From the NCBI GenBank assembly GCA_002269645.1, contig NIVC01004852.1:1-33321 (forward strand): 33,321 bases of DNA, written 5' to 3'. The stretch comes from Macrostomum lignano. Its lineage: Eukaryota. The position numbers were made by a program, and so were the translations under genes. How positions within the stretch are numbered: position 1 is the first letter of the stretch; each line of letters begins with the position of its first letter. Of this stretch, positions 14,407 to 21,641 are shown piece after piece. Below the pieces are notes generated by a model. It was given only the letters and a program-made list of their open reading frames with translations, was not told where the DNA came from and ran no database searches.

Positions 14407-15413
14407 ATGCAGCTCCGGGCGGGTGGCGGCCTGCTGGCAGGCGTCCTGCTGACAGTCGGTCTGCTGCTCAGTGCGGCGACACCGTCGTCAGTCAGCGTGC
14501 TGGCCGCCGTGGCCACCGGGGACGGCGGCGGCATCCGGCAGGGCGCAGCGGCCCCGAACTACACGAACATCGTTGACCGCATTGTGGAGAGCATCTTCCA
14601 GGGCTACAACAAGCACCAGCGTCCGGTGCCGGCCCGCCGCTCCCGGCCGGACGGCCGCATTGAGGAGGACTCCACCGTGGTGTTCGTCAACATGAAGATC
14701 CTCAGCATCAACAAGGTGGACGTCATCAACATGGAGTTCACGCTGGACATGTACCTGCGCCAGTACTGGAAGGACCACCGCCTCATGTGGAACCACAACC
14801 AGTTCCGCTTCTACAACGAGTCCATCGCCATTCCCGCCAAGAAGGAGAACCTCTGGCTGCCCGACCTGTTCTTCCGCAACGGCAAGGAGGGCTACCTGCA
14901 CAAGATGACGCAGCCGAACTACCTGATCAGGGTGGACCCAGACGGCAGCATTCTGTACTCGCAGAAGGTGACCATGAAGTTCTCCTGCCAGATGCAGCTG
15001 CAGACGTTTCCTATGGACACGCAGACGTGCTACATCAACATCGGCAGCTACGGGTACACCACCAAGAACCTGGAGTTCCGCTGGCTGAAGGGCAAGAAGA
15101 GCCCCGTCGAGTTGGACTCCAGCATGCAGATCTCCGAGTTCAACACGCCCAAAAGTGTCAAGGTGATCGACTGCTCGAAAAGCAGCACCACCAGCACGGG
15201 CAGCTACGCGTGCCTGAAGGCCGTCTTCAAGCTGGAGCGGCAGCTGGGAAGCTACCTGTCTGCTACCTACATCCCCGCCATCTTGATCATCGCTGTGAGC
15301 TGGCTCAACTTCTGGATCAACGTTGAGGCCGTGCCCGCCAGGGTGTCTCTGGGGCTGCTCACCCTGCTGGGCATCCTCACTCAGGGCATGTCCGTCATCA
15401 ACAACCTGCCCAG
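14407..15413 (+). CDS. Cys-loop anion channel (lophotrochozoan GluCl-like), variable first exon A: signal peptide, ECD, M1, M2
   Basis: ATG at 14407 opens a hydrophobic leader (MQLRAGGGLLAGVLLTVGLLLSAA). It contains loop D YLRQYW, loop A WLPDLFFRN, Cys-loop CQMQLQTFPMDTQTC, loop C C-x12-C, and anion-type PAR before M2. Strong donor ag|gtgagt (phase 2) in LPR. Spliced to 21161-21641 the total is 1488 nt (495 aa). Confidence 0.92.
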
Positions 15414-15439
15414 GTGAGTGGCGGAGTCTGAGCAGTTTA

Positions 15440-15835
15440 ATAGCAAGGATTCTCCATCTTGATTTGGATGGAAATCTCCATCCTGGTTGGGCGTCCTTGG
15501 GGAATCTCCATCCTGGTTGGGCGTCCTTGGGGAATCTCCATCCTGGTTGGGCGTCCTTGGGGAATCTTCACTTTGGTTGAGTGTTCTTGTGGGAATCCCC
15601 ATCCTTGTTGAGTGTGACTTGTGAATCTCCATCCTGACTGGTGTCACTGGGGAATCTCCATCCTGATTGGTGTCACTGGGGAATCTCCATCCTGGTTGGG
15701 TGTCCTTGTGAGAATCTTGGGCGTCCTTGGGGAATCTTCACTTTGGTTGAGTGTTCTTATGGGAATCCCCATCCTTGTTGGGTGTGACTTGTGAATCTCC
15801 ATCCTGGTTGGGCGTCTTTGGGGAATCTCCGTCTT
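15440..15835 (+). repeat. 30-bp minisatellite (GGAATCTCCATCCTGGTTGGGCGTCCTTGG-like) with an internal 170-bp duplication
   Basis: The units are visible. The same variant block starts at 15561 and 15731. Confidence 0.9.
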
Positions 15836-16706
15836 CGTTTGGTGTCTTTGAGAGAGTTTAGATTTCTTGGCTATTGGCAAAACGCAGTCAATGTCAGCAT
15901 TCTCTGCACTGCCTAAGCTGTTATGACTTTTCATTAGAAGTTCTTCCCAAATATTAAAAGAATTATTGTAATATTTTCACTCAATGTCGCGCGCTGAGCC
16001 ACTAGAGAGAGAGCGAGAGAGCTCTCAGCACACCAGGTGAGCAGGGGAAGGTGGGGACCCCTTGCTGAGGGGGCAGGAGGAAAAGCAAAACTTCACCTCC
16101 ACACTTCTCAGCGGTTGTAGGAGGGTCTGGGAGAAGAGTGGAGAGCATAGTGGCCTTGAGAAGCTAGAGAGTTGAGTAGCCAACAGTGCCGGTGAGACTT
16201 GCGCCATCTTGCGGTCTCCGCCACTCTCCTCAGCTCTCCGCCTCCGCCGCTAACGCCTGGCAAATTGAAAAAGTCGCAGTCCAATCTCGCTGGGAAATGG
16301 AGCTCTGGAGTGAGTTAGTTACCCGGGGAGTCACCGATGTGCTGTCCTCCATGCAGTTTTGAGTATGAGTCCTCATACCAATAAGTGTGATATAAATATA
16401 GCGAGGCCATGCATAGCGCTGAGCCTTTGACGACCCACTCTGGGGACGGCCACTCGCTCCTGCACTGCGAGTCGCATTTCTGTCAGTATTGCCTGGGCCC
16501 GGAGACTGTCGGGCATGAGAGAATGAGTCTGCGAATTCGACAGGCTGTGGCGCAGGCTGAAATCAATGGCAGCTTAGCAGGACCAAAATATGTTAGCAAC
16601 ATCTGAGTAGCAATGCACTGTTTTCTGCTATTTGGAATGATAGCATTCTATTAATCTACGAGTATCTAGTAATGACGATATTCTCGCAGTCTGAGTGTGC
16701 AGCAAA

Positions 16707-16760
16707 ACAGACAGACAGACAGACAGACAGACAGACAGACAGACAGACAGACGAACAGAC
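16707..16760 (+). repeat. Short (AGAC)n microsatellite between variable exons A and B
   Basis: About 11-12 perfect units. Confidence 0.95.
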
Positions 16761-17417
16761 AAAGTGAGTCAAATACTCACGGGTGTCTGGTTAGACACAT
16801 ACATACATGGTCTGTATTGGCCAGACACGCAAAATGAGTCGGATTATGCGCAAAGGACTGGGTCAGTCCATCTGACGCAGAGGAAAATGCTACATCGTGT
16901 CAGAAAAGGTGGTCCAAGTCACCGGGAATCAGCGTCAGACGCATGCATCTAAGAAAATGGAAATCACAATATTTTTCATCACGCTTCAGGGTTTCTACTA
17001 TCAGTAGTAAAACAAACAAAGAACGATATATCAATATCTCGCTGAAACTTAGCTATTAGTTCTCTCAGAGGTTTGTATACAAAAAATCGTGGCCTCTCGA
17101 CAGACGCACCATGGCAACCGTGGTGCAATGAAATATGCGTATCGACTCGCCAAGTTGTCAGTGCAACAACGAGGCTTCAGGCTTCTCAGAATCACTTTTT
17201 CTCCCATGGAAATTCGCCTCGCACCTGTAAAAAAGCACCCGAGAAGCTGCGTCAAGAGCGCCATCGTTCGGCTAAACTCCGGCTCGCATTGGAGAGCAAA
17301 AAAACCCTCGGCTGAGACCCGCAGGACGGCCTCTCTATCTGGGATTGGCTGGTCCCGGTTGCTCTGTATAAAACTGAGTTTAACGGCTACGAAAAAGCTC
17401 AAGAGCTCAAGGCAGTC

Positions 17418-19513: not shown

Positions 19514-19812
19514 TCGGAAATAAAGCATTCACGCTCAACGTGGGCATTCTCCCAGTCTCTTTATCCCTCCATCCCTGCTGAGCCATCGTCAATGAGCAGC
19601 AAATGTGAATTAATGCACGAGTTTGTTACTTGCGTTTATTACTGCACTTTTTAGGTGAAGCAGGAAGAAATTTACAGAAAGTTTAGGATTTTCATTTCAT
19701 TCGGCATTGACGTTAATTGCTATTCAATTCTGAGCATTGAGAGGCCAGCTGAAGCAGATGGAAATTGCTCTCGCATATCCAGGGACTACTTAAACTGCGC
19801 ATATCATGCCAA

Positions 19813-20351
19813 CTGTCTGTCTGTCTGTCTGTCTGTCTGTCTGTCTGTCTGTCTGTCTGTCTGTCTGTCTGTCTGTCTGTCTGTCTGTCTGTCTGTCTGT
19901 CTGTCTGTCTGTCTGTCTGTCTGTCTGTCTGTCTGTCTGTCTGTCTGTCTGTCTGTCTGTCTTAGTGTCTGCCTGTCTGTCTGTCTGTCTGTCTGTCTGT
20001 CTGTCTGTCTGCCTGTCTGTCTGTCTGTCTGTCTGTCTGTCTGTCTGTCTGTCTGTCTGTCTGTCTGTCTGTCTGTCTGTCTGTCTGTCTGTCTGTCTGT
20101 CTGTCTGTCTTAGTGTCTGTCTGTCTGTCTGTCTTAGTGTCTGCCTGTCTGTCTGTCTGTCTGTCTGTCTGTCTGTCTGTCTGCCTGTCTGTCTGTCTGT
20201 CTGTCTGTCTGTCTGTCTGTCTGTCTGTCTGTCTGTCTGTCTGTCTGTCTGTCTGTCTGTCTGTCTGTCTGTCTGTCTGTCTGTCTGTCTGTCTGTCTGT
20301 CTGTCTGTCTGTCTGTCTGTCTGTCTGTCTGTCTGTCTGTCTGTCTGTCTG
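19813..20351 (+). repeat. (GTCT)n microsatellite with CTTAGTGT interruptions, intronic
   Basis: Direct inspection. Confidence 0.97.
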
Positions 20352-20679
20352 CTTTTGCTGCAGGCATTAGACGAGCAATTCTAAACAGAATTTGTCTATG
20401 GCCAAGCCTCATTCAGCGCTGTGCGAAAAGGAAACAAATCTTTGCGAAACCCGTTTAGAAAACAAAATGTTTCTTGATAGACTTGGTTAGTTTAGCATTC
20501 CTCCGCTTCGGCGGTCCGTTTTTGGAAGATGCATTTTTTAAAATCAACGATGATTTGCAACTCATGCTACTTACTTCCTAATTAGTCTGTATGAAACACG
20601 ATAATGCGGTAGGTGCAGTTTAAGAATTTGGCCTCAGACTCTTTAAGTGGCTCACTGTTTGGGCCTTGGCAATAAACAA

Positions 20680-21118
20680 GGATGAATGGAGGAAAGAAAG
20701 GATGAATGGATAAATGGATAAATGGATGAAGGGATTAATGTATGAATGAATGGATGGATGAAGGGATAAAGGGTGAAGGGATGAAGGGATTAATGTATGA
20801 AGGGATAAAGAGATAAGTGAATGAAAGGATGAAGGGATGAATGAATGAATGGATGAAGGGATTAAGGGATGAGGGAATGAAGAGATGAAAGGAATGAAGG
20901 GATTAATGTACGAATGAATGAATGAATGGATGGTGAGATAATAGGGGAAGGGGTGAAGGGATGAATGGATGAAGGGTGAAGGGATAAAGGGATGAAGGGA
21001 TGAAGGGATGAAGGGATGAAGGGATGAAGGGATGAAGGGATGAAGGGATGAAGGGATGAAGGGATGAAGGGATGAATGGATGAATGGATGAAGGGATGAA
21101 TGGACGAATGGATGAAGT
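20680..21118 (+). repeat. Purine-rich 8-bp repeat (GAAGGGAT/GAATGGAT)n ending about 40 nt before the shared acceptor
   Basis: Direct inspection. Confidence 0.93.
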
Positions 21119-21160
21119 GAGAAAGCAGAGCCTCACGTACCGCCAACCGCAACTCCGCAG

Positions 21161-21641
21161 GGTGGCGTACATCAAGGCCATAGACATCTGGATCATCGCC
21201 AGCATCATGTTCGTCATCGGTGCTCTGATCGAATTTGCTGTTGCCTCGTTCCGCGCCAGGCGCACCAAGATGGAGAGCTGGCAGCGCGAGATTCGCGGCG
21301 TTGTCCGCTCGGAGCTGCAGCGGCTGGCCGTCATCCGCGGCGGTGGCCTCCCGCCCGGCCTGCCCTGCCACGGCGGCGGCGGCGGCAACCTGCACGGCTA
21401 TCCCGGCTTCCCGGAGGAGCTCGAGGACCTCCTGGCTGCCAGCATTGAGGACGGCGGCGGCGGCGGGGCCGGCGGTCCTCACGGCAACAACAAAGGAGCG
21501 CCGCCGTCTCCGGTGCCATCGCCAGACTCGGACATCGACACCTACAGCCGGTTCGTGTTCCCCGCCTGCTTCCTGCTGTACAACTGCTTCTACTGGCTGT
21601 ACTACCTGGTGCTGGTGAGCACTATCAACCCTGAGGAGTGA
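21161..21641 (+). CDS. Cys-loop anion channel constant exon: M2-M3 linker end, M3, intracellular loop, M4
   Basis: Acceptor ccgcag|G completes the Arg codon, giving LPR|VAYIKAIDIW. M3 is IWIIASIMFVIGALIEFAV and M4 is IDTYSRFVFPACFLLYNCFYWLYYL. Stop TGA at 21639-21641. Confidence 0.95.

Follow-up and report, generated by a model that had tools for sequence, protein, structure and literature searches.

Two large first exons and a single M3-M4 exon at a Cys-loop channel locus of the flatworm Macrostomum

We analyzed a stretch of 33,321 nucleotides from the flatworm Macrostomum lignano (contig NIVC01004852.1 of assembly GCA_002269645.1), referred to below as the window. A preliminary description, made from the letters alone, had proposed that it holds a pentameric ligand-gated chloride channel gene built from two variable first exons, each encoding a receptor and the beginning of a pore, and one shared exon for the membrane-spanning segments M3 and M4. 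Our main finding is that these exons, here called A, B and C, are intact, and that their arrangement is almost certainly real and conserved. All three exons and their splice signals lie on the forward strand.

Exon anatomy and predicted products

Exon A (14407-15413, 1007 nt) and exon B (17418-18400, 983 nt) each contain an ATG, a signal peptide, an extracellular domain, M1 and M2, the signal peptides having been called by eye from their hydrophobic cores without a predictor. Both exons end in phase 2, A at a donor CAG/GTGAGT and B at a donor AAG/GTTTAG, the slash marking the splice site. Exon C (21161-21641, 481 nt) follows an acceptor CTCCGCAG/G, and comprises the third base of an Arg codon, M3, the intracellular loop, M4 and a TGA stop. 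The split falls in the same Leu-Pro-Arg codon in A and B alike, two nucleotides of Arg coming from the first exon and the third from C. An in-frame stop lies 5' of each first exon, at 14104 for A, which has no upstream in-frame ATG, and at 17313 for B. As for the donors themselves, that of A (15414-15419, GTGAGT) is near-consensus, and that of B (18401-18406, GTTTAG) is weak, departing from the consensus at positions +3 to +6; the latter may favor the A donor in transcripts carrying both.

The A-to-C intron (15414-21160, 5.7 kb) holds exon B and several tandem-repeat arrays, and the B-to-C intron (18401-21160, 2.8 kb) holds 26 copies of a 25-mer, (CTGT)135 and 52 copies of GAAGGGAT, an array that comes as close as 45 nt to the acceptor of exon C. 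The 3' splice region common to both joins (21130-21160), read directly from the sequence, consists of a CTCAC branch-point-like motif and a C-rich tract with no AG inside, followed by the CAG acceptor. When six-frame translations of the window were searched with profile hidden Markov models (HMMs; option --max), M3 and M4 each gave a single match, at 21162-21305 and 21528-21623. Neither these scans nor tblastn (word size 2, E up to 100) found further M3 or M4 coding sequence anywhere in the window, including between A and B, as the preliminary description had maintained; we therefore rejected a hidden M3-M4 exon in the window, exon C being the only match.

Both joins predict proteins that are open throughout with no internal stop, of 495 amino acids for A+C and 487 for B+C, reproducing the products, phase-2 donors and matching acceptor described earlier. 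The Pfam domain Neur_chan_LBD is matched over positions 2-215 of 216 of its profile (1.3e-48 for A+C, 1.4e-45 for B+C), and Neur_chan_memb is matched as well (4.2e-27 and 8.3e-28, respectively). Chance is ruled out, as the open reading frames (ORFs) run uninterrupted for 1 kb and match at E-values under 1e-45. Each first exon also carries N-glycosylation sequons (NYT in A, NHS in B, plus NES). By themselves A and B encode only M1 and M2; all four segments come together in one polypeptide only once either exon is spliced to C.

Several features assign the products to the anion channels of the Cys-loop family. The 15-residue Cys-loop, with two Cys separated by 13 residues, reads CQMQLQTFPMDTQTC in both exons (A 14986-15030, B 17967-18011), and the loop-C Cys pair, which forms the second disulfide of the two-Cys-loop subgroup of glycine and glutamate-gated chloride channels (GluCls), lies in DCSKSSTTSTGSYAC in A and DCTRDSATTTGSYAC in B. 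The Pro-Ala-Arg anion motif stands at positions -2' to 0' of M2, within VPARV, in A (15334-15342) and B (18321-18329). Among solved structures, the nearest are the glycine receptor (GlyR) alpha1/alpha3 (E about 1e-71) and GluCl alpha 3RHW (1.5e-67); M2-M3 aligns without gaps to GlyR alpha1, so that the intron falls in the M2-M3 linker, at the codon corresponding to K276.

The homologues of both products are flatworm Cys-loop channels, the nearest being M. lignano models. The closest characterized relative is SmGluCl-2 of Schistosoma mansoni, which aligns with 92% of B+C at 49% identity; this protein assembles into glutamate-gated chloride channels, and its gene, like that of SmGluCl-3, has a single exon (PMC3757052). 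Members of the S-like GluCl clade are recognized by aromatic and Thr residues in loops A-C, an Arg in loop D, a Ser in loop E and, in lophotrochozoans, an Arg in loop A (FFRN) that coordinates the alpha-carboxyl of glutamate (PMC4338433). A+C and B+C carry every one of these signature residues: both isoforms have YLRQ in loop D, LYSQK in loop E, GSYGYT in loop B and TGSY in loop C, and the loop A Arg segment, LWLPDLFFRNGK, is identical in SmGluCl-2, in A and B, and in their counterparts A' and B' described below. As predicted proteins, A+C and B+C are thus complete subunits of the anion-selective Cys-loop type, belonging to the S-like GluCls of flatworms, and would presumably be gated by glutamate.

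Homologous loci, gene conversion and selection

The layout of variable first exons and a constant exon recurs at another locus (L001, with positions in its own numbering), on M. lignano contig NIVC01001215.1, where A', B' and C' follow each other in the same order with matching phase-2 junctions. A' has its ATG at 10001 and its donor after 10944 (CAG/GTAGGC), and ends ...QGMSVINNLPR. B', 11 kb downstream, has its ATG at 22006 and its donor after 23000 (CAG/GTAGGG), and ends ...QASTVMANLPR. C' begins at 24824 behind an acceptor TTCACAG/G preceded by CTGACTAAC; it is 79% identical to C, and is the only match of the M3 and M4 HMMs in L001. Both first-exon donors there are GTAGG, unlike the GTTTAG of B in the window. 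Beyond the three exons, tblastx found no alignable sequence between the window and L001, introns and flanks being different; the two loci are either orthologues in different species or old paralogues. As this second assembly shows the order A-B-C with different introns and flanks, it removes mis-assembly and a missing private exon as explanations. The arrangement is kept independently at both loci.

A further locus bears on the age of the intron. A homologous exon covering the Cys-loop to M2, on an unrelated low-GC (36%) contig (L002, ENA ERZ25070786 ctg72480l, 3364-3771), ends at the same phase-2 NLPR donor (CCCAG/GTGAGA) and has an additional intron within the Cys-loop; no M3-M4 was found within the remaining 1.1 kb. 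Since L002 has the same intron position, the intron is older than the A/B duplication. In the cestode Spirometra sp. (CM118279.1), two tandem members of the family (10001-11398 and 16076-17653) are complete single-exon genes. In M. lignano, a further protein record, P0034 (UniRef A0A1I8J7E9), represents a third A-type first exon, with GMSVINNLPR and a PDGKIEED linker; it is about 25% diverged from A and A', and suggests that more loci of this kind exist in M. lignano.

Synonymous divergence (dS) and the ratio of non-synonymous to synonymous divergence (dN/dS) were computed between the window and L001. For A versus A', dS was 0.66 and dN/dS 0.26 over the whole exon, 0.93 and 0.19 over the N-terminal segment, and 0.43 and 0.14 over M1-M2. 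B versus B' gave 0.78 and 0.27 over the whole exon and 0.52 and 0.14 over M1-M2, and C versus C' gave 0.44 and 0.29. A, B and C are therefore under purifying selection. In neutral simulations with a per-lineage divergence of 0.2-0.4, a 1-kb exon stayed free of stops in at most 0.4% of trials.

A and B share a gene-conversion tract of 395 nt with one mismatch, at 14679-15073 in A and 17660-18054 in B, which encodes beta1 through loop B, that is, loops D, A and E, the Cys-loop and loop B. In this central block, dS between A and B is only 0.039 in the window and 0.091 in L001, compared to 0.65-0.80 between genomes, and the variable sites are genome-specific, A being equal to B inside each genome. 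Such identity within genomes against divergence between them is the signature of recurrent gene conversion.

Outside this block the two exons have remained distinct. The A-type M2 signature (15346-15405) comprises a Ser at 2' (15346-15348) and GMSVINN at 15'-21' (15385-15405), and is identical in A' and P0034. The B-type signature (18333-18392) comprises a Thr at 2' (18333-18335) and ASTVMGS at 15'-21' (18372-18392), B' having the 2' Thr and ASTVMAN. At 2', then, the A-type exons (A, A' and P0034) have Ser and the B-type exons (B and B') have Thr, and positions 15'-19' read GMSVI in all A-type exons and ASTVM in all B-type exons; an N-terminal linker motif, PDGxIEED, is likewise common to the A-type exons, P0034 included. 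Type-specific residues common across loci imply that the A/B split is older than the divergence of the two loci. That the M2 difference survives conversion suggests selection for two distinct M2 segments.

The preliminary description held that the two subunits differ in agonist site and pore, and this proved true in part. Loops D, A, E and B, like the Cys-loop, fall in the converted block and do not differ between A and B, nor does the TGxY of loop C, so the core agonist contacts are common to both. The products differ in the signal peptide and the linker between alpha1 and beta1, in loop F and on either side of loop C, at a few residues of M1, and at M2 2' and 15'-21'. Only those at M2 2' and 15'-19' and in the N-terminal linker are kept across loci, those of loop F and the loop-C flanks being lineage-specific. 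We lean towards the view that gene conversion holds the glutamate-binding core identical, and that selection holds two distinct M2 segments for pore and gating.

Transcript records, competing explanations and proposed mechanism

The GenBank annotation of M. lignano derives from RNA-seq, by way of StringTie/TACO, TBONE and TransDecoder (PMC5730564). One of its models, P0001, begins at the ATG of A' and uses the A' donor; A' is therefore transcribed and its donor spliced. B' is covered by a partial, truncated model, and C' is unannotated. We weighed whether the tail of P0001 might be a genuine alternative 3' exon of A', and rejected this, since the tail is an out-of-frame piece of an unrelated ORF that is absent from the window. 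That ORF, SAP-like with a coiled coil, lies within the A'-B' intron (L001 16200-16520, about 105916-106236 of NIVC01001215.1), and GenBank model BOX15_Mlig026840g2 fuses A' to it out of frame, giving a chimeric protein record.

Protein searches for the spliced products were of unequal reach. Neither A+C and B+C nor the ORF-level products of A, B and C had an exact match among 15 billion proteins, a negative that says nothing on expression. An exhaustive HMMER search of 1.84 billion representatives, whose clustering at 50% identity could hide one, returned no Macrostomum protein spanning the junction. Word-indexed searches with the C-exon peptide and with a junction-spanning query were empty and are not counted as absence: in a positive control, local phmmer recovered dozens of C-exon homologues at 1e-25 to 1e-30 that the word-indexed search had missed.

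We consider it somewhat probable that both isoforms are made at this S-like GluCl locus, through two 5' first exons with their promoters. The following observations weigh against this. No transcript or deposited protein was found that joins A or B to C at either locus. In P0001 the A' donor is spliced, out of frame, to a cryptic acceptor that lies 5.4 kb further downstream, at L001 16313, and P0034, the second A-type model, also runs into non-M3 sequence. The B'-to-C' junction is as undocumented as that from A' to C'. The B donor of the window, GTTTAG, matches the consensus GTRAGT poorly compared with the GTGAGT of A. A TATAAAA (17367-17373), 51 nt 5' of the exon B ATG and a candidate core promoter for B, is weak evidence, found only for B in the window and not conserved in L001; indeed, the 5' regions of the first exons are not conserved between the two loci. 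Finally, the constraint on A might partly be imported from B through gene conversion. The missing junction records are uninformative, because even the 'obvious' B'-C' gene is absent from the annotation.

Several of these observations would suit a locus with a single productive first exon, which we regard as unlikely: B+C would be the gene, and A a partial 5' duplicate that never joins C, yields at most truncated products of extracellular domain, M1 and M2 or non-coding RNA, and looks intact through continual repair by conversion from B. The A-to-C junction is indeed undocumented, P0001 and P0034 leave the A donor for non-M3 sequence, the join would skip 5.7 kb (13.9 kb in L001) past a competing donor, and 395 nt have been copied between A and B. 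A mirror form makes A+C the gene and B, with its weak donor GTTTAG, an exon being lost in this genome. Yet the segments of A untouched by conversion are themselves constrained (omega, or dN/dS, 0.19 in the N-terminal segment and 0.14 in M1-M2), and GMSVINN, the 2' Ser and the PDGxIEED linker are identical in the window, L001 and P0034. A has stayed open at both loci, against a neutral probability of at most 0.4% per lineage. The tails of P0001 and P0034 are mutually unrelated, lying out of frame in foreign sequence that is absent from the window, and so resemble cryptic splicing or assembly noise, and B'-to-C' being equally undocumented, missing annotation does not discriminate. With a whole-exon dN/dS of 0.26, A is not a decaying orphan; the preliminary description had named an orphan partial duplicate as a possible refutation.

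Rather less likely still is that A+C and B+C are both made and the choice does not pass through two promoters. Transcription could start upstream of A alone, with B-type mRNAs receiving their 5' end through spliced-leader trans-splicing near the B ATG, or a common non-coding leader exon could be spliced to A or B in a mutually exclusive manner. Trans-splicing is common in this animal, 38.8% of M. lignano genes being spliced-leader trans-spliced and about 7% of assembled transcripts being multi-gene precursors (PMC5730564). Moreover, an AG stands shortly 5' of all four ATGs (for example GGCAG/TC ATG for B), and a conserved promoter motif was not found. However, the AGs upstream of B follow a purine-rich stretch and not a polypyrimidine tract, the TATAAAA at -51 of B lies at the right distance for an independent start, and no leader exon is visible, although none would be recognizable from sequence alone. 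Very improbable, finally, is an assembly artefact, be it mis-joined haplotypes, collapsed paralogues or a private M3-M4 exon of A lost from the assembly. Tandem repeats make up 35% of the window, and genomes of the M. lignano type are duplicated and difficult to assemble (PMC5730564, PMC10468722); nevertheless, an independent long-read M. lignano assembly has the same order, a single C exon and different introns and flanks, and A and B are too different for alleles at their 5' ends, in loop F, in loop C and at the end of M2, a difference that is itself conserved between genomes.

The two-isoform locus that we favor could have arisen by tandem duplication of the 5' exon, probably with its promoter, but without the 3' exon. 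One breakpoint would lie upstream of the gene and the other in its single intron, in the M2-M3 linker, producing the order promoter-exon 1-donor, promoter-exon 1-donor, acceptor-exon 2. All four first exons (A, B, A' and B') have an ATG, a hydrophobic leader and upstream in-frame stops, and no convincing polypyrimidine-AG acceptor was found upstream of any of them, though AGs are present. Transcription beginning at A would give an RNA spliced from the strong A donor to the sole available acceptor, at C, skipping B: lacking a polypyrimidine-AG acceptor upstream, B should not be recognized as an internal exon. A transcript initiated at B would join the B donor to the same acceptor. We infer that separate promoters choose the first exon, and that both joins occur in vivo. 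Both products would keep identical core glutamate contacts and one M3-M4 intracellular loop, a region that mediates trafficking and clustering in other Cys-loop receptors. Positions 2' and 15'-19' of M2 influence block, allosteric modulation and gating in other family members. If both joins are used, the two subunits, with one intracellular loop in common, would have distinct conductance, block or gating, and perhaps be made in distinct cell types.

Exon B is flanked by complementary microsatellites: (GACA)10 at 16710-16749, between A and B, has its reverse complement in the (TGTC)n array at 19814-20349, between B and C. In a pre-mRNA initiated at A the two could pair and loop out exon B, but we rejected such a device and regard the complementarity as probably a coincidence, as L001 does not conserve the arrays and the window has five occurrences of this microsatellite. 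More generally, the approximately 35% of the window in tandem repeats consists of minisatellites of 18-33 nt in long arrays and of these (TGTC)n/(GACA)n microsatellites, examples being the arrays at 1-1678, 1715-2680, 12250-13009, 18466-19109, 19813-20351, 20696-21117 and 21884-23051. Upstream of the channel locus, a forward-strand ORF (3465-3800) encodes an IBR (in-between-RING) domain with a weak RING match, and probably belongs, as one of its exons, to a gene for an RBR-type E3 ubiquitin ligase. Downstream of exon C, another forward-strand ORF (26917-27684) encodes a glycosyltransferase family 92 domain (Pfam 1.8e-13). On the reverse strand, 28355-30825 holds three long ORFs of 429, 257 and 156 amino acids, none of which matches Pfam significantly; they may be exons of a single unannotated gene, or derive from repeats. 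Scanning the window for Rfam families and tRNAs gave no hits.

Comparison with known systems

The protein relationship is clearest with SmGluCl-2 (Dufour et al. 2013, PMC3757052; Lynagh et al. 2015, PMC4338433), which shares the Pro-Ala-Arg motif, the two Cys loops, FFRNGK, the loop D Arg, the loop E Ser, the aromatic residues and Thr of loops B and C, and motifs of M3 and M4. Gene structure differs: the tandem paralogues of cestodes are complete single-exon genes, whereas the Macrostomum locus has an intron in the M2-M3 linker and has duplicated the 5' exon alone. Flatworm GluCls are candidate anthelmintic targets. The gene models at the present loci are wrong, being chimeric or truncated with exon C unannotated, and inventories of Macrostomum subunits are therefore incomplete.

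Clustered protocadherin and UGT1A genes (PMC1885805, PMC3325998) resemble this locus: large first exons stand in tandem, each encoding the functional N-terminal part, a signal peptide included, up to a donor of its own, and are joined to common downstream exons. The window and L001 both have separate start codons for the variable exons, phase 2/2/2 junctions and a single C exon. Unlike those clusters, there are only two variable exons and one constant exon here, in an unrelated protein family; promoter choice is a conjecture for Macrostomum, and stochastic or combinatorial expression has no support here. Gene conversion among protocadherin variable exons was reportedly described by Noonan and colleagues in 2004. 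In vertebrates, GABA-A receptor genes (GABRB3 exons 1/1A; GABRA2, GABRA5) have promoter-linked alternative first exons (PMC1934366), which alter only the 5' untranslated region or signal peptide, whereas the Macrostomum first exons encode about 68% of the mature protein, with both its binding domain and its pore helix. No Cys-loop gene with large alternative first exons was found in the searchable open-access literature. If both isoforms are made, which we consider somewhat probable, the locus would be the first variable/constant layout of the protocadherin/UGT1A style in the pentameric ligand-gated channel superfamily.

The closest parallels within that superfamily come from nematodes, and they correct the earlier statement that known Cys-loop splicing swaps only small segments. 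The unc-49 GABA-A receptor locus of Caenorhabditis elegans has, behind one promoter, common N-terminal exons and varying 3' blocks (Bamber et al. 1999, reviewed in PMC6920096), each of which encodes part of the binding site plus all transmembrane segments (PMC6920096). In nematode avr-14 (gbr-2), GluCl alpha3A and alpha3B have the same ligand-binding domain and different channel/C-terminal domains, through alternative 3' exons (Laughton et al. 1997, reviewed in PMC8841521). Whole C-terminal channel modules are thus exchanged in both. Two nematode protein records, P0122 and P0124, join alternative unc-49-type C-terminal blocks into one 'protein' of 850-890 amino acids, and show that multi-module Cys-loop loci are routinely mis-modelled.

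Like unc-49, the Macrostomum locus would derive several subunits from a single Cys-loop locus with a common block and large alternative blocks, and, like avr-14, two subunits from one GluCl gene with one large module in common. Its polarity is reversed: common 5' exons with alternative 3' blocks are not what we found, the 5' block (extracellular domain, M1 and M2) being the one that varies and M3-M4 the one that is shared. As the variable block is 5', selection between isoforms has to take place at the 5' end. Should both joins be used, Cys-loop subunit diversity would be produced by duplicating the half with sensor and pore, the half with M3-M4 and the intracellular loop remaining fixed. This would complement the unc-49/avr-14 solution, in which the channel half varies behind a fixed sensor, and would offer a natural experiment on modularity whose exchange point is the M2-M3 linker, with gene conversion and selection working on different parts of one exon. 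The Macrostomum locus is, accordingly, not the first case of large-module swapping in this family, but the mirror image of unc-49 and avr-14.

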